Source: Cyanophora paradoxa CCMP329 (taxonomy: Eukaryota; Plantae; Glaucophyta). Taken from it: a stretch of DNA of 64,000 bases. Of the stretch, positions 3,201 to 15,048 are shown in pieces; the stretch's first letter is position 1; every line of letters starts with the position of its first letter. The stretch is from the NCBI GenBank assembly GCA_004431415.1, contig QPMI01000186.1, forward strand, positions 1 to 64,000, given 5' to 3'. The position numbers and the translations under genes are program-made. The notes beneath the pieces are model-generated. The model saw only the letters and a list, made by a program, of their open reading frames with translations. It was not told the origin of the DNA and searched no databases.

Positions 3201-4734
3201 TCTTCGCGGCCTCTGACGAAGGCCGGGGCAGGGTTCATCACGGTGTCGCAGACGGAGGCGCGGCGCTGGACGGAGGACGAGGAGCGCCTCCTCGGCACCG
3301 TCGCCGAGCAGATGGGCCTCGCCATCGGTCCGCCCCGCATCCCTGGCCGGCGCCTCGCCGCAGGCCCCCCGCGCGCGCCGCTGAGGGCGGCGCAGCGCAG
3401 TCGCAGCTGCTGCGGGAGGAGCAGCAGCAGCGCGAGCTCCTCGCCTCCCGCGTGCGCCCCGCCCCCGAAGCCCGCTTGGGCGGACCAGAGCTCGCGCGCA
3501 CGCCAGAGATGCACCTTGCTAGGACTCGAGACGTAGGCTACAGAACGCCTGTAGATCATCTCAGACGGTTTATAGAAACCTTTTGCACATGCCGGCCTGC
3601 CCCGCGGCGCATCCCGCCTCGCGATGGCGGCTGAGGCCTCGCGGGCAGAACGCGGCGCTGGAGGAGGCGCGGCGGGAGGCGGACGCGGCGAGCCGCACCA
3701 AGTCCCAGTTCCTCGCCATGGCCCGCCCGCCCCGCCCTTGCGGGGGATTGAGAGCGAGGTGCTCGGGGGGCGGGGCTGACGGCGGGGGCGGGCAGGTCTC
3801 GCACGAGGTGCGGACCCCGATGAACGCCATCCTCGTGCGCCCGCCCCCCGCCCGCGCCCCGCGCATCCCCGTAGGCGCCGGTTGAGGGGGCGGGGCGGGC
3901 AGAACATGGCCGACTTCCTCCTCGTGCGCCCCGCCGCCCGCCCCGGGGCCTCCGCCCGGCCGGGGCGCCCCGGCTGAGGCCGCCGGCGCCCCCGCAGGAG
4001 ACGGAGCTCAGCGCGCTGCAGCGCGACTACTGCGCCACCATCCAGGCGCGCCCGGCCCTCCCGGGCGGGGCGGCGGGGGCTCAGGGCCGGGGCAGAACTC
4101 GTCGGCGGCGCTCCTCAACATCCTCCGCGACATCCTCGGTCCGCCCGCCCCCGGGGGCGCGGCGGGCGGGGCGGGGGGCGGGAAGAGGAGCCGCGCCCCG
4201 CCCGGCAGCCTGCCGGCGCTGAGGCGGGGCGGGCGGGGCGGGGCGGGGCGGGGGCAGACACGTCGCGGCTGGAGTTTGGGAAGGTGGAGATCCGGCGTGC
4301 CCCCGTCGCCCCCGCCGCCCTCGTCCAGCAGGCCCGCCCCCCGCCCCGCCCCCGCCCCGGCCGCCCCGCCACCCGCCCCCGAGGGCCGGCTCGAGGCGGG
4401 GCCGGGGCAGGTGGTGGACCTGATGGCCCCCTCGGCCGCCCAGAAGGCGCGCCACCCCGCCCCGCCCCGCCCGCCAGCCGCCCCACCCGAGCCCCGCCCC
4501 ACCACGCCGCCTCGGGCGGTCTCTGGAGCGGGCGGCGCCGCGCTGAGCCGGGGCCTCGGGCGCAGGGTTGGACCTCTCGTACCACGTGGCGGCGAGCTGC
4601 CCGGCGATGCTGCACGCCGACGGGCCCCGCCTCACCCAGATCCTCGTCCGCCCCGGCCCGGCCCCCGGCCCTCCTCTTCCCCCCGGCCCGACGCGTTGGA
4701 CGCGCCCGCAGATCAACCTCATCGGGAGTGCGCC

Positions 4735-4765
<31 letters not shown>

Positions 4766-6983
4766 CGCCGCCCCGCGAGGCGGAGCTGAGGCGGGGGCGC
4801 AGACGGCGTCAAGTTCACGCACAGCGGCGAAGTCTCCCTCCGCCTCTCCTGCGAGGCCCGCCGGCCCCCCCGCCGCCCCCCCGCCAGCGGCCTCGAGGCG
4901 GGGGCGCGCTGAGCGGGCGGGGGCGGGGCAGGCGGGGGCGCTGCGGGCGGTGATCCGGGACACGGGGATCGGGATCGCTGCGGAGGACCAGGAGAAGCTC
5001 TTCTCCTGGTTCCACCAGGTCGACTCCTCCCACTCCCGCCAGTACGGCGGCACCGGCCTCGGTGCGCCCCCGGGCCGCGCGGGGCCGGCGGGGCCGGGCC
5101 CGAGGGTGCGGGGGCGGGCAGGCCTCTTCATCTCGCGCAAGCTCGCTCTCCTCATGGGCGGCGACATCGAGGCCCGCTCCGAGGAGGTCCCGCCCCCCTC
5201 CCCCGCCCCCGGCCCCTCGCCGGCCCCGCCCAGCCTCGCGCCCCCGCAGGGCCGCGGCTCCACTTTCGTTCTCACCATCCCCCTCGCCTGCCTTGCCGCC
5301 CCCGAGGGCGAGCCCGAGGCCGAGGAGCCGGCGCACGGGGCGGAGGCGGGGGGCGGGGGGCGGGCGCTGGCGCTGGCGGGGCGCGCGGTGGCGCTGTGGA
5401 CGCGCTCCGAGGCGACTGCCGCCCTCGTGCAGGCGCGCCCCTCCCCTCCACCGCGCGGGGCGAGGGGCCAGGGGAGCCCTCGAGGCGGCCCGCCAGGCGC
5501 TGCGCCCGGAAGCCTCACCGGGGTCGCGCAGGACGCGCTGGCCGCCGCCGGCGCCACCGTCCTCCTCCTCGGCCCGCGCCCGCCCGGCCCCGGCCCCGGC
5601 CCCGGCCACGCGTGGGCGGGTGGAGGCGGCGGTGGTGGACGTGGGGGCGCGCTCGACGCTGCTCGCGGGGGTGCCGGCGGAGGTGGCCGCGCTGGCCTGC
5701 CCCCTCGTCGCCCTCGCCCCGTGGGGACCCGCCCCGAGGAGAGCGCCCTCTTCGAGGTGTGCCCCGCCCGGCGCCGGGGCCACCCTCGCCCCTCACGCCA
5801 GCGCCGCGGCGCGTGGGCGCTGCCGGCAGGCGTGCGCGGGGTGGTGAGCAAGCCGCTGCGCCCCGCAGCCCTCGTTGACTGCGTCGCCGCCGTCGCCGCG
5901 GGGCGCGCCCCCGCCCCTCCTCCGCCCGCCGCCTCGCCGCCTCCTCCCGGCCCCGGGCGATTGCGAGCAGGCCCCGGCCCCCGCCCCGGCCCCGGGCCGC
6001 GCCGCGAGCCCCCTCCGCATCCTCGGTCCGCCCGCGCCCCGTCCCGCCTCGGTCCTCGGGGCCGTGACGCGGGGCGGGCGCAGTGTGCGAGGACGTGGAG
6101 GTGAACAAGCGCATCCTCCTCCTCATGCTCGAGAAGCGCGGCTACCCCGCCGCCGCCGCCGTCCGCCCCCGCAGAGGCCCCGCACCGCCCCGGCCGCCCC
6201 GCCCGCTGAGCCCCTCCCCGCAGGTGAGCAACGGGGCGGAGGCGCTGGCGGAGGTCCGCGCCGCCGCCGCCGCCGCCGCCCCCTACGACTGCCTCGTGCG
6301 CCGCCCTCGCGCCCGCCTGCGCGAGTGACGGCGCCCGCTGAGCCGACAGCGTGCACGTGCGCAGCTCCTCGAGTGCGCGCGGACGGCCCCCCCCCCCCCC
6401 CCCCCCCCTCCACCCCCCCCCCCTCCCCCCCCCCCTCCTCACGGGGCGGCGCAGCGTGATGATGCCGGTGATGGACGGATGGAGGCGGCGGGGCGCATCC
6501 GCGAGGAGCTCGCCCCGGAGCTCCGCCCCTACATCATCGCCCTGTCCGCCCCGCTGCCCTCCCCCTCGCCCCCCGGCCCCGGCCCCGCTGCCCTCCGCCA
6601 TTCGCATCCCGTTGCTGGGATCAGATCTAGAGGATGCGCAGCACGAGGATCTAAGACTGCCTCGCGAGCGGCGCGGGGTGCGGGCGCGGGGCGACCGTGA
6701 CCCCGGGGCGGCGCAGGACGGCGAACGCGATGGCGGGCGACCGCGAGGCCTGCCTCGCCGCCGGCATGCACGACTACATCCCCAGTGCGCCCCCCGTCCC
6801 CGCCCCGCCCCGCCCCGCCTCCGCCCCTTCCTGCCCCCGCGGGCCCGCTGAGCGGGGGCGGCAGAGCCCGTGCGGCCGGACCTCCTCCTCGCCTCCCTCG
6901 AGCGCTGCCGCCGCGCCCGCCGCCCCGCCCCCACCCCCGCCCCGGGCCCCGCCCCGCACACTCCCGCCGGGCCCGAGGCCTGA
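213..6983 (+). CDS. Multi-GAF hybrid histidine kinase (GAFs-HisKA-HATPase-degenerate REC-REC), many short introns
   Basis: Spliced reconstruction gives GAF ends ([16 protein letters not shown]|AMAHARL; [22 protein letters not shown]|AQSQLL), H-box FLAM|[14 protein letters not shown]-box INLIGNGVKF, G1 DTGIGI, G2 GGTGLGL and receiver [43 protein letters not shown], with stop TGA 6981-6983. The 5' start is uncertain, and there is one apparent 1-nt loss near 6478. Confidence 0.9.
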
Positions 6984-7739
6984 GTGCTGCCGCCTGAATC
7001 CGAAGCGCCCCGCCGCCCTGCAGGCGCCTGCAGCCCAGTAACTGTATATCTGTATCCACATCCATACAGTATATGCGAGTAGCCAGTAGCCCAGTAGACA
7101 GGCCACTTTATAGGATTTCTTTTTGATCTGTGTTCAGTGTTGAGCTCCGAATTTTCAATCTCTGAACATGTATACGTAGAGGTGTTCCTCCGTAGCTTTC
7201 GAGCTTTGAGGCTTTTTACAGCATTTGCCTTTCACAGATCCACACTTTTTCTTTAACATTTGATTTTCGTCAGCATCCGTTTTCCTGATGATCAGATTTA
7301 GAATCCTCAGAGCACTCGGGGTGGCGGCCGGGGTGCTCGGGGGCCTCCGGCGCGGGAAGCCCTGAAGAACGCTTCAGGCTCCGAGGCTCCGGGATCCAAG
7401 GCCTCGAGGCTCAGCGGCTCAGAGGATCCGGTCGCGATCGGGCCGCCGGGCCGGGGAACAGCCAGAGCCTGAGAGCAAACGATCAGTCCGACGGTCCGCG
7501 CCCGCCGCCGGCCGCGGGCCGCCCCCAGGGTCCGGCAGTCGTCATGGCCCACTGGCGATGGCTCAGCCCGCAGCCACGGCCTGTGACGGCGTGCACCCAT
7601 ATCATAGAATCCGTGCACGGTGCCCACTTGGCTTGTGGATGGCTGGCCCAGTGCACTGCGGCACGTGGCCGGGCCATGCATATGGGCCCGGGGTAAGAAC
7701 TAAAAAAATCAGTCATCGTGGCATGTTTCAAGTTTCTAG

Positions 7740-7808
7740 ATCTAACGTCATGACCAGCATCTGCATAATTATATAAAAAATGCACTGCCGCAACTAATTA
7801 GAACTAGT
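7740..7808 (+). repeat. 69-bp direct repeat, left copy (target-site-duplication-like)
   Basis: ATCTAACGTCATGACC...TAATTAGAACTAGT is identical to 12346-12414. Confidence 0.93.
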
Positions 7809-7968
7809 CGAACCTATGTGAGCGTCAGCGTAGCATAGGGCAGTGTATGGCTGCCAAATAAAGGCAGCCTTGCTTACGCACATATGTACAAGGGGCGCAC
7901 TTACAAGTTATAAGTGCGCCCCTGGGGTACAAGCCTCAGTCTTGCTTCGCAGCCAAGGCCTCTAAGCT
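7808..7968 (+). repeat. 161-bp element repeat, copy 1 (upstream of gag)
   Basis: TCGAACCTATGTG...GCCTCTAAGCT is identical to 9851-10011. Contains AATAAA, TTATAA and several palindromes. Confidence 0.95.
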
Positions 7969-7974
7969 GAGGTC

Positions 7975-9062
7975 ATGGCTCGCTCGCGGAGGAGCCCATC
8001 GTGGGCCCCTCTGTTCGTAGTCGTCTTGACCATCATTCTGCTCGTCGCCTGTGCCGAGGCGGCGCAGAAACGCAAGTCAACGGCCACTGGTGCGCGCAAG
8101 TCGGCCAAACCCAAGACGGCGACGACCCCGCGCCCCAGGCCCGGAGGTCGTCATCTCGTCTTCAAGCTCCGGCCAACGACAGTGCGGAGGAGGAGCAGCC
8201 TGCACCTCCGCCGACGCGATCTCGCAAAGGCAAGGAGAAAGCCGTGTCGCCGGATCCGGACCAGCAGCAGTCCGACCCAGAAGATGAACCTGAGGACGAC
8301 GTTGCCGTTAGACTGGCACAGCGTGAGCAGTTCGGTGGCGCCTACGACGAGGAAGAGCAAGTGGCTGCGCGCAACTTTCCGAACTTGGCGCAAGTGGATC
8401 CGGGCGCGGCTGGCCCGTCAACCGGCTTCACCCGTCACCTTCAAGGCCCTTATGCTGTACCCGCTGGCAACTCGACTGCCCCAACGTCGACCAAACCGGC
8501 AGCGGGTGCGCTTCCGCCAGCGTGGGCTGAGCTACTTCAGCGTGGGATAGATAGCGCGGTCATCAAGCTTCAAGAGCAGCAGCAGCAGCAGCTCGGCGAG
8601 CAGCAGAAAGACAACCATGAGGCTATGCAGCTCAAAAACCCGTGGCTTCGTGAGCTTGCCCTGCAGCTATCGCAGCTTAAGTTTCAGCTCAAGAGATGCT
8701 CTTCGTGCACTGCGTGCTACGATCACGTAAAGCAGAGCCTCAAAATCCTCGACGAGCTCCGGAAGCGGATCGACATTCGCGACAAGGGCGGCGACAAGCT
8801 TGCCGAGCGGCTGGCAGGTGTGCCAGAGGAGTATCGGGGCACGGCTGCGGCGCTGGCGCACGCGCTCAACATTGCTGGCCCGGAGGCCGCCGGCGGGCGC
8901 CCGTATGTGCAGCACGCCAACCCGCGGCCCCAGCACCAGGGCCGCGATCGCCCGCCGTCGCAGCGCAACAGCGGGATGTGTTTCCGCTGCAACAAGCCCG
9001 GGCATGTCGTGAAGGATTGCCCGAACGAGCCGCGCCCCGGCTGGCGCGACCCCCCCAAGTAG
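7975..9062 (+). CDS. gag: Gag-like ORF1 with C-terminal CCHC zinc knuckle; one apparent frameshift near 8127
   Basis: Knuckle CFRCNKPGHVVKDC and a central coiled coil. The ATG at 7975 (MARSRRSPSWAPLFVVVLTIILLVACAEA..) joins the 8001-9062 frame if one C is added to the C-run at about 8126-8129. Confidence 0.8.
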
Positions 9063-9850
9063 ACGTGCGCGCCCTTGTGTGGACGCGCAGTTTTCGTTTC
9101 GCATTTCGCTAGATACTAGTGTTTCGGTGTGTTTCTTGCAAGCATAAGTATTGCTAGCATATGCAAGTGCAGTCTTCAGAAGATCTAGAGTGTGCGTGTA
9201 TGCTTCCCTAAACATGCAATACATGTATTATGCTTCCATTTCATGTGATGGTGTGGCCGGGTGCGGCATTGTGGCCGGGTGCGGCATAGTCATTACCAGC
9301 CGTGGTGGCGCCGGCGTGCTGTGGCTTTATGCATTGGTCCTGTGTGCATTTGCATGTGTTAACACTGTGAAGTGTGACTGTGATTGTAGTCTACTTTTCT
9401 TTTCAATGCTAGTGGCATATATTGCCGTCTGGATGACTCCAACCTGGCAGAGCCCCAGCTGACTCCCGGCAACTGACCTGTTTCCAGCACAGGTCAGGAG
9501 TGCTGCTGGCTGTCGAGCTCCTGGCCCCCTCCGGCCTTCCCGTGTGTCGCTATCGCATACTGGGCGCTCTGAAATTAACCTAGTGCATTTTGCAGGTGAG
9601 GAGTACACAAGGGTACGAAGATTCCATGATGCCAACTGTTCCCGCTGATATCGCAGGTTGGCGCATTCATCCAGAAAGTCCATGCCTGTGCAAATGTGTT
9701 GTGGCACCGTGGGTGCATTGTGGCACTGTGTGTGCATGTGAGCTCAAGACTTGAACCAACAAGCACATTGACACGCTCACTCTTATATTCTTCATGACAA
9801 GACATGTTGTGCTTAGCTTGCTGTAAGCAAGGCTGCCGTGGCAGCCATAC

Positions 9851-10011
9851 TCGAACCTATGTGAGCGTCAGCGTAGCATAGGGCAGTGTATGGCTGCCAA
9901 ATAAAGGCAGCCTTGCTTACGCACATATGTACAAGGGGCGCACTTACAAGTTATAAGTGCGCCCCTGGGGTACAAGCCTCAGTCTTGCTTCGCAGCCAAG
10001 GCCTCTAAGCT
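9851..10011 (+). repeat. 161-bp element repeat, copy 2 (upstream of pol)
   Basis: Identical to 7808-7968. Preceded by 9823-9850, which is complementary to the repeat interior. Confidence 0.95.
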
Positions 10012-10079
10012 TCTTCCCGTTCGCGTGTCACCATCTTCAAGCCAGCGGCTGCATGGACCATCAGCTGTAGCAGTGCTAG

Positions 10080-12076
10080 ATGGGCACCGCGATAATTGGG
10101 CATGTCTGCCAATGCAAGGCCTCACCTCACTTTGCAGGAGGCTTTGTTGCATCCTGCATTCAAGCTGCAGTCCAACAGTGGAGAGCGATTGGAGCCAATG
10201 ATGTCGTGCTCAACTGGATCTTGCGTGGTTTCCCTTTGTCAGGAGCGAGGCGGCTGCCAGCAGAGCGCCGGGCCAACCACAAGTCTGCGGCTGTGGACCA
10301 TCAGGACTTTGTGAGAACCGAAATTCAGAAGCTTTTGCGCACGGGAGCGATCAGAGAAGTTGAAGAAGCTCAAGTGAACATTGTCTGCTCACTGTCCGTG
10401 GTGCCCAAGAAGACTGGATCCAAGTTGCGGCTCATCTGGGATGGCCGGCCTACCAATAAAGGCCTTCCGGACATCCCCTTCAAGTATGAGACTCTTGAGC
10501 ATGTCGCAGCCATGCTGCGCCAAGGCTGGTACATGTTCACTATTGACCTTGAATCTGGATACCACCACGTGCCAGTCTCACCGCAAGACTGGCGGAACAT
10601 GGGCTTTGAGTTTGACAGCAAATTCTATGTGTACACAGTTTTGCCCTTCGGCCTCAAGCACTCACCGTTTGCATTCGTCAAGATCATGCGACAAGTGGTC
10701 AACTACTTCCGCGTGTCTTATACATACTCTTCTTCTTCTTCCGCCGCTTTGGCATCTTCGTGGTGAACTATGTTGACGACTGGTGGTTTGCTGCTCCAAC
10801 CTACGAGAAGGCCTGTGAATTGCGGGATTTCGTCCTCAAAACATTTGCTGCCCTCAAGCTTGTGGTCAACAGCAAATCTGAGCTCACCCCAGCACAGTCG
10901 GTGGCTTTCTTGGGCTTCATAGTGGACTCCGCCCGCATGTTGTTTGAAGTACCCCAAGACAAGCTTGGTCGTCTGCTTGCTTTGATCAAAGGGCTTCTGA
11001 AGAAAAAGAAATCAGCATCTGCACGTGAAATGGCCAAGGTCGCCGGCACCCTTGTGTCCATGGCACGGGGCTTGGCTCCAGCTCGCATCAAGACCAGGTC
11101 CCTCTTTCGATACATCAATGTCGTGGCAAGAGAATGGCATTGGAATCATCCAGTGGAGCTCACCAATGAGACTCGTCGGGAACTTGAGTGGTGGCTGGCC
11201 AACATCCACCGATACAATGGCCGCTGCCCTATTCGGCCTGAAAGGCTCCTTGTGTTGACTACGGATGCAAGCCATGTTGGTGCAGGAGCCTGGATCACTA
11301 CCCGAATTGGTGATGCTCAACCTGTGGCTTGGGAGCTTGAGCCTGCCCCATTCCAGTGCCTGTGGAACCAAGAAGAAGCTCAGCAAATTTCGTCGTGGCG
11401 CGAGTTAATGGCAGTGCTTCGCGCTATGCAGCACTATCAAGGTTTATTGCGCAATCAGAACATCTTAGTTCGCTCGGACAACACAGTGACTGTGGCCTAC
11501 ATCAACAATGGTGGCGGAAGACATGAATACCTTTGCCGAGTTGCAGCAGCAATTTGGGATATTGCTCTGCTCAATTGCATCAGCATTGAAGCAGAACACA
11601 TTCCTGGTGTTGACAATGAGTGGTCCGATGCTTTGAGTCGCTACTTTTACCCCGCCGACTACTCTTTGAAACCTGGGTATTTTGCCATGGTCAGTCGGAC
11701 ATTTGGACCTTTTGATATTGATCGTATGGCCTCATCAGCCAACACTCACCTAAATCGATACTTTTCCATTGATTTGAATGATCGACATGCTGAAGGATAT
11801 GATTGCTTTACAGCAACCTGGCGTGGTGCTCGTAATTACGTCTTTCCGGACCCAAATGTCCTCTTGCACCTTGTGTCACATGTCCGCCAGTGTAGGGCCT
11901 CGGCAGTTTTTATTGTCCCTCAGTGGCCCTCAGCTCCATGGTGGCCACAGTTGCAGCTTGCCTTGCGTGCACCTGCAATGGTGCTCGGCCCAGCATATGA
12001 CGTGTGCTATCGCGGGCCTCGCTCGGCACAGTTACCTTCCTGGATTCTTGTTGCTCTTTATGTGTCGTGGGAGTAG
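10080..12076 (+). pseudogene. pol: DIRS-type pol: reverse transcriptase + RNase H + DNA adenine methyltransferase-like domain, frameshifted by a 32-bp insertion
   Basis: RT motifs QWRAIGA..VLNWI..GF, KLRLIWD, FTIDLESGYHHV, LPFGL and YVDD. RNase H motifs LTTDAS, WRELMAV, RSDN and HIPGVDNEWSDALSR. MT motifs FGPFDIDRMAS..YVFPD..VPQWPSAPWWP. Removing 10713-10744 restores NYFRRFGIFVVNYVDD. Confidence 0.92.
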
Positions 12077-12232
12077 ATTGAAGGCTCTTGCTGCAGAATT
12101 CAACTCCTGCTCATCTCTGCTCAGCTTACTTTGTCCAGCAACAGGGATAGAAAGCTTGAGTGGGGGGCTTTAAAAAGAAGAAGAAGAAATGTAGTCTGAC
12201 ATACCCTTGACTCTGGTGATGCAGGTGCTCGT

Positions 12233-12345
12233 ATGGCTGATCTGCTCAACCGGGTCACTTTCTACAGAACAAACTCTGTGAGCGAGCGAACCCAAAGCCT
12301 CTACGCCCGCTGGGTCGTCCTCTATGAAGGCCATTGCGCGGTTCA
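12233..12345 (+). pseudogene. N-terminal fragment of tyrosine recombinase, cut at the right 69-bp repeat
   Basis: MADLLNRVTFYRTNSVSERTQSLYARWVVLYEGHCAVQ fits the S..T...Y...W..F..FC pattern at the start of DIRS YRs and lies in the expected position after pol. No catalytic RHRY region remains. Confidence 0.55.
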
Positions 12346-12414
12346 ATCTAACGTCATGACCAGCATCTGCATAATTATATAAAAAATGCACTGCCGCAAC
12401 TAATTAGAACTAGT
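12346..12414 (+). repeat. 69-bp direct repeat, right copy
   Basis: Identical to 7740-7808. Confidence 0.93.
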
Positions 12415-12814
12415 ACTGCCGCAATGCAGATCTGCCCTAAAGCTTGCCCTAAAGCTTGCGCTAGAATCTTGGCGGTCCAGAAAAGGACTTGTCGCTCATA
12501 ATCATGATCAGCGTGCCCCAAGTAGGAATCACGGATGAAGAGCTTCACAGAGGAATCAGCTGCAGAATCTGTACAGACTGGCAACCGCAAGGCAACGAAA
12601 TTTCAAAAGAAAAGCAGAGCGAGGGAGGCGCTGAAACTGGAAAGCCTGACTGCAATCTAATCACTCACATCTGGTAGTTACACAGGACTGCTTATTGAGT
12701 TCAATAGATTTCAAACTAAATTTTCGCCTTCTACAGAAGAAAAAAAAGCGAAGGCGATGAGCGTAGATACTCGAAGAGAAAAGAATGGGCAGCGGGTACG
12801 GTGACGGCGGCGCC

Positions 12815-15048
<2,234 letters not shown>

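Follow-up and report, generated by a model that had tools for sequence, protein, structure and literature searches.

In retrotransposons with split direct repeats, A1 stands at the 5' end, and the series B1-A2-B2 is found toward the 3' end (PMC6681497). Where the internal repeats sit varies: they lie between the methyltransferase (MT) domain and the tyrosine recombinase (YR) gene in the nematode form of Pat1 and in Kangaroo, and after YR in Ngaro, VIPER, and the echinoderm form of Pat1 (PMC4157794). In the same comparison, translocation of the internal repeats is treated as a character that has changed several times, and a zinc-finger motif in Gag serves as a criterion for Pat1-like elements (PMC4157794). 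For DIRS1, an internal complementary region (ICR) serves to rebuild the termini (PMC3266345). Here we describe an element at positions 7808-12345 of a 64,000-nt stretch from the glaucophyte Cyanophora paradoxa CCMP329 (contig QPMI01000186.1, positions 1 to 64,000, forward strand; hereafter the window). We consider it probable that a multi-copy PAT-like YR retrotransposon of C. paradoxa, with the layout A1-gag-spacer-B1-A2-pol-YR-B2, gave rise to this element as a very young and defective copy; in that layout, pol comprises reverse transcriptase (RT), RNase H, and MT domains and the internal repeat junction falls between gag and pol.

The first-pass annotation of this DNA described a DIRS-type retroelement in which gag and pol are each preceded by the same structured leader, and the underlying sequence features were borne out. 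Two copies of a 161-bp repeat, which that annotation called R and we call A, occupy 7808-7968 (A1) and 9851-10011 (A2) on the plus strand; they are identical at 161 of 161 positions, in direct orientation, and offset by 2043 bp. Only 6 nt separate A1, the 5' terminal repeat, from the gag ATG at 7975, and A2, the internal copy, ends 68 nt before the pol ATG at 10080, which sits immediately after a TAG. The reported gag-pol spacing of about 1 kb also holds: 1,017 nt containing 22 ATGs separate the gag stop at 9062 from the pol ATG. Folded alone, A reaches -74.5 kcal/mol (z -5.4), in agreement with a structured leader. Immediately upstream of A2 lies a 61-bp sequence, B1 (9790-9850, plus strand), which we take as the internal copy of the 3' terminal repeat. 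Of the split direct repeats, A1 and B1-A2 are thus present and exact in this copy, and B2 is absent.

Sequence from the element was matched in 20 public sequencing runs, all of one organism, and contigs were placed on 7600-12900 from two DNA runs (X1 and X13; years 2019 and 2024) and from one RNA run in each of two studies (X15 and X17). Word depth summed over contigs, a measure that does not equal copy number, was ~57 in the flanks and ~1200-1500 in the element for X1, and 12-14 and ~410-480, respectively, for X13. The resulting element-to-flank ratio of ~25 is in line with the many gag models: the gag protein cluster has 14 members, 11 of them EukProt models of C. paradoxa, and several of its sequences each have annotations on three or four contigs. 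Within the element, depth was nearly equal over gag and pol (1205-1305 versus 1448-1494 in X1; 408-434 versus 421-476 in X13). Bins containing A rose to ~2960 in X1 and ~990 in X13, a depth ~1.8-2.5 times that of gag or pol once overlaps are allowed for, and the bin holding B together with the start of A reached ~4420 and ~1400, as expected when both sequences are present at twofold depth.

Contig structure points the same way. Contigs break at 7939 and 9982, in each case 30 nt before the 3' end of the A copy, exactly as a k=31 graph containing a two-context A requires. In both DNA runs, the gag-side contig stops at 9819, 30 nt into B, and 9790 is the point at which a second contig with other upstream sequence joins; the combination of this contig end and this separate entry defines B as 9790-9850, a repeat with two left contexts. 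Taken together, the roughly twofold depth of A and B, the contig breaks, and the two contexts of B indicate a split-direct-repeat layout with its junction between gag and pol. In complete copies, B2 would lie after YR, a position suggested by the twofold depth of B and by its second upstream context.

These data also speak to whether the second copy of A is a peculiarity of this locus, be it through insertion, solo or nested, or through misassembly. An AGCTT motif at 9815-9819 and 10008-10012 lends itself to the insertion version of this idea, and the copy is visibly damaged elsewhere. Against it, A and B each stand at about twice the gag or pol depth in runs from 2019 and 2024, and the contigs of the closest relatives break just upstream of pol. 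The window contains 116 instances of the motif itself, and the first base of the repeat is 9851, 31 nt past the first AGCTT and not directly after 9819. We rejected AGCTT as a target duplication, also because the sequence between 9819 and 9851 is part of B, for which a separate second context exists. A one-off rearrangement is accordingly highly improbable in our assessment, and the order repeat-gag-repeat-pol is better viewed as a family trait, as the depth in two DNA runs supports.

Among the relatives, the contigs of the three closest for which contigs exist (L001, L002, and L004) begin 62-165 nt before pol and hold no gag, as expected if a repeat just upstream of pol broke the short-read assembly. 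No repeats were found in the relatives' contigs, which end at the repeats. The L004 contig (108-3154) encodes a 654-aa pol and a 334-aa YR with PF00589. The distant relatives L005-L007 carry gag, pol, and a third open reading frame (ORF) on one contig with a gag-pol gap of 68 nt, and this contiguity is the ordinary arrangement. They derive from three metagenome assemblies; the contiguous ORFs are 585, 593, and 313 aa in length (L005:1110-5684), and they have no internal repeat. Further copies of the present element were sought by exact-protein look-up (P0027; the pol C-terminus), which found none, by a metagenome pattern scan, which gave no match, and by a metagenome protein scan, which returned a 29% relative alone.

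The first-pass annotation had also raised the possibility that the element is segmented, with gag and pol-YR modules separately transcribed or circularised. In its fullest form, this proposal treats A-gag-B (2043 bp) and A-pol-YR-B as self-sufficient units, both with full ends, which YR would circularise, resolve, and insert one apart from the other; the joined form described here would then be a co-integrate, fused and resolved by YR at the B-A junction. The architecture is compatible with it in several respects: each half has A at its left and B at its right, as does the whole element; a circle of the whole element would contain two identical direct B-A junctions; and pol has its own ATG and leader. 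If the proposal were correct, this would be a two-component retroelement whose non-autonomous gag unit and enzyme unit occur together or apart. The near-equal depth of gag and pol in both DNA runs argues otherwise. Among the joints and contigs listed, none represents a free module either, although short-read contigs cannot link across B, which makes this absence of evidence only. We therefore did not retain the segmented scheme and consider a bipartite life cycle very unlikely; the preferred reading remains a single element with an internal junction between its two genes.

On its predicted domains, the element is a probable member of the DIRS order, with a CCHC gag, RT, RNase H, a Dam-like MT, and a YR stump. 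The earlier DIRS-type call was thereby supported by Pfam matches to zf-CCHC, RVT_1, RT_RNaseH, and Dam and by the resemblance of the stump to the YR of a relative, and the Pfam domain search found no integrase domain in any ORF. Presence of the MT domain rules out Ngaro and VIPER, and direct repeats without inverted termini indicate the PAT-like group. A repeat search found no terminal inverted repeats of the element; the inverted repeats that it contains are local hairpins, in A and across the B-A junction. The G+C content of 7808-12345 is 51-64%, and that of coding DNA in the window is ~80%.

The gag gene (7975-9062, plus strand) ends in a C-terminal CCHC zinc knuckle that matches zf-CCHC at 26.1 bits (cut-off, 20.8), so the zinc-finger motif used to recognize Pat1-like elements is found here. 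Its frame is broken near 8125 by a 1-nt deletion in a run of C, behind which the family contigs hold one extra C. Comparison with the intact C. paradoxa gag model P0030 shows the same break from the protein side: residues 1-52 match the frame of the ATG, and residues 52-361 match another frame with 310 of 310 identities. The first 32 residues of gag (7975-8070) resemble a signal peptide, with basic residues, a hydrophobic run of ~16 residues, and then AEA, which is unusual for gag; the same start is found in intact annotated models, P0030 included.

The pol gene (10080-12076, plus strand) encodes RT, RNase H, and a Dam-like MT domain. RVT_1 was matched with an E value of 1.1e-10 and also in 19 of 20 relatives, and RT_RNaseH was matched at 4.8e-5, just under the Pfam cut-off. 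The Dam-like domain (PF05869) is weak in this ORF (E value of 0.0055, residues 308-397) and was matched in the same region of 8 of 20 aligned relatives, with a best E value of 1.5e-6. A 32-bp insertion in the RT region (10706-10737), with the 7-bp direct repeat CTTCCGC at either side, shifts the frame. This insertion is private to the present copy, being missing from the family contigs and from relative L001. Part of it resembles low-complexity CTT runs elsewhere (loose contig ends at 10711 and 10741). In this copy, therefore, gag and pol are frameshifted alike.

Downstream of pol, the previously annotated YR gene stood up in part. What remains is a stump of the first 37 codons (12233-12345, plus strand), cut at 12345, which is homologous to the N-terminus of the YR encoded after pol in L002 (41% identity, E value of 1e-6). 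Complete YRs of the L002 family, P0041 and P0042, carry PF00589, the phage-integrase catalytic domain. In each DNA run, a 1,508-nt family contig extends 368 nt beyond 12345, and its first 30 nt keep the YR frame, from which it follows that the family has more of the YR gene and that this copy is truncated. The evidence for YR in this family itself consists of the 37-codon stump and these 30 in-frame nucleotides, with PF00589 seen in the YRs of relatives. Compared with the family contigs, this copy differs by 3 substitutions in 4.5 kb, by the missing C behind 8125, by the added 32 bp, and, in the spacer, by one 6-nt and one 1-nt indel. So few differences mark the copy as young and privately damaged. 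With a 1-nt deletion in gag, a 32-bp insertion in RT, an end at YR codon 37, and no B2, it is immobile; the copy in hand is a dead member of its family.

The manner in which this copy entered its site appears to have been unusual. It is flanked by a 69-bp duplication of host DNA at 7740-7808 and 12346-12414, the two copies being identical at 69 of 69 positions and the last T of the left copy being also the first base of A1. By depth, the duplicated host DNA is single copy (flanks ~57 versus ~1400 for the element in X1). YR elements normally leave no target duplication. The insert combines an exact A start with a 3' end cut within YR, the lack of B2, and a perfect 69-bp duplication, and a tyrosine recombinase does not produce this pattern. 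Neither junction has poly(A) or poly(T) or any useful microhomology, and a LINE-type (long interspersed nuclear element) event is for these reasons not indicated. Our best guess is capture of an incomplete linear molecule, either cDNA or DNA, at a break with a long stagger, without insertion by the recombinase; because B2 is missing, the captured molecule could not have been circularised.

The same ends might instead be explained by normal YR insertion of a complete element followed by loss of the YR gene, B2, and some host DNA, the 69-bp repeat having arisen from repair. Such a history would fit the exact left end, where A begins from its first base as in other copies, and would agree with the usual lack of target duplication at YR insertions. 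Deletion alone, however, does not give a perfect 69-bp duplicate of the left flank at the right end, and the duplication together with the near-identity to the family points to a single recent event. We consider later loss unlikely and favor capture of an already truncated molecule. If so, 3' truncation combined with a 69-bp target duplication would hint that such elements can enter DNA without the recombinase.

For complete members of the family, the published split-repeat model offers a plausible route of replication. Full-length RNA would be reverse transcribed, the internal B1-A2 junction would act as the template that joins the B end of the cDNA to its A end, and YR would insert the resulting circle, opened at the B-A boundary. 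The place of the junction within the RNA would be immaterial to this template role. A and B are also partly complementary. A long, imperfect hairpin of ~100 nt spans the B1-A2 junction (9819-9922, plus strand), in which the last ~32 nt of B pair with nucleotides ~38-72 of A; this junction region folds at -114.6 kcal/mol (z -8.4). Through this complementarity, both ends of the RNA or cDNA could be drawn together, much as they are by the ICR in DIRS1 (PMC3266345). An Rfam search gave a sub-threshold match to a microRNA precursor alone, which reflects the junction hairpin.

Next to the paired segment in A is a 13-7-13 palindrome (7891-7923; second copy, 9934-9966), which was matched twice, once in each A copy, and never in shuffled sequences. 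We rejected it as the crossover site of integration. Loose contig ends before 7805 and 9850 represent the divergence of the flanks of different copies at the start of A, and since those flanks diverge exactly at the first base of A, 83 nt upstream of the palindrome, the palindrome cannot be the crossover that defines the ends. Separately, one RNA contig of X17 omits 67 nt of A (9863-9929), between two TATGT motifs, with loss of one hairpin arm; this is probably a skip of the reverse transcriptase during library making and not splicing.

An internal junction at this position also bears on how pol is expressed. Translation of pol by scanning from the full-length RNA is unlikely, given that pol has its own ATG after a stop, 1,017 nt and 22 ATGs downstream of gag. 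The simplest solution, plausible from the layout, is a separate pol-YR message that would begin in A2, with A2 as its putative leader or promoter. To this limited extent, the separate transcription suggested in the first-pass annotation may be correct.

Several points weigh against the account given so far. It is depth and contig breaks that suggest B2, and the linkage gag-B-A-pol, in other copies, and the depth argument uses the summed contig measure, which differs from copy number. The RNA contigs (X15 and X17), from which rare forms drop out, contain no sense transcript that would speak for a leader or promoter role of A. Capture as the route of entry is a guess, and loss of the 3' end could also date from a rearrangement after insertion. 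Placement with PAT-like and not DIRS1-like elements draws on repeat geometry and the MT domain, and is provisional to that extent.

Transcripts of the element were encountered in the antisense orientation. In the X15 and X17 contigs, the pol region is represented by spliced antisense RNA only; contigs lose rare forms, and a sense RNA could be among those lost. Thirteen joints between 9725 and 12292 occur in these two runs and are absent from the DNA runs. They define minus-strand introns at 9726-9780, 10049-10125, 10291-10342, 10589-10665, 10801-10887, 10997-11049, 11104-11163, 11360-11530, 11673-11749, 11818-11869, 11973-12035, 12107-12204, and 12242-12291. These introns measure 50-171 nt; all 13 are bounded by GT..AG on the minus strand, with GTG donors in 8 and CAG acceptors in 11. 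By bin depth, coverage inside the introns is ~0 (e.g., bin 11317-11493 is fully accounted for by 43 exon bases). The same antisense contig continues unspliced through the spacer and gag to 8205.

When joined, the antisense exons yield no long ORF; their longest stop-free stretches, 158-186 aa, are no better than those of the unspliced strand, and a coding antisense gene was rejected on that basis. The splice sites are partly kept in L001, which is 72% identical, at a level not clearly above background. GTGAG is overrepresented on the antisense side of pol (8 versus 2), but this excess was likewise set aside as a signal, because related families do not share it. Given the lack of a long ORF, the partial retention of splice sites, and the unshared GTGAG excess, we read the splicing as opportunistic processing of a putatively noncoding antisense transcript. 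Abundant antisense small RNAs have been published for C. paradoxa (PMC3700990), and an antisense-only RNA with 13 introns bears on how transposons are handled in Cyanophora.

RNA contigs (records 20 and 25) also cross the junction between 12345 and 12346, at low flank depth. RNA contigs from two studies connect the element, at its truncated end, with the adjoining host DNA (12316-12900), which fits read-through between this copy and the side of the minus-strand kinase gene. The host ORFs beside the insert are an HATPase_c ORF at 4284-6101 (plus strand) and a protein-kinase ORF at 13394-14083 (minus strand), and the two genes face each other.

Between gag and the junction lies a noncoding spacer (9063-9789, plus strand) without an ORF that has a family match. 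Within it, a 247-bp segment (9429-9675) has its own flanks in other contigs and bears 9-nt terminal inverted repeats (TCTGGATGA / TCATCCAGA); it may be a passenger resembling a miniature inverted-repeat transposable element. A form of this segment without 9570-9651 is present in both DNA and RNA runs, with an RNA depth above that of the element.

Classification of split-repeat YR retrotransposons makes use of where the internal junction lies. In the papers compared here, which do not include the original reports of PAT and Kangaroo, we found no junction placed between gag and pol. The layout proposed here would show that the place of the junction is free, provided that it is inside the RNA. 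It would also uncouple gag from pol while giving each the same leader, an alternative to frameshifting or overlap for setting gag:pol dosage.

Comparison with the described groups places these features in context. Ngaro and VIPER have split direct repeats like those proposed here, with A1 at the 5' end and B1-A2-B2 after it, and encode a YR (PMC6681497), of which the present copy keeps a stump; they differ in being without an MT domain, which this element has, and in carrying their internal repeats downstream of YR. DIRS1-like elements share the full domain set, MT included, and the complementarity of B and A recalls the DIRS1 ICR (PMC3266345), but these elements have inverted terminal repeats and a 3' ICR, whereas the present one is bounded by direct repeats alone. 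The closest likeness is to PAT-like elements such as the nematode form of Pat1, Kangaroo of Volvox, and Toc3 of Chlamydomonas, which encode the same RT, RNase H, and Dam-like MT and a YR, the last seen here as a stump; a CCHC gag is common to this element and Pat1. Their split direct repeats, A1...B1A2...B2, match the arrangement proposed here, in which B2 is suggested for the family, and in nematode Pat1 and Kangaroo the junction is also internal and away from the 3' end, between MT and YR (PMC4157794). Unlike in those elements, B and A are complementary here and form a hairpin at the junction, gag stands about 1 kb from pol, pol follows a full copy of the 5' leader, and the junction itself lies between gag and pol, a site that would extend the known range beyond the MT-YR and post-YR positions.

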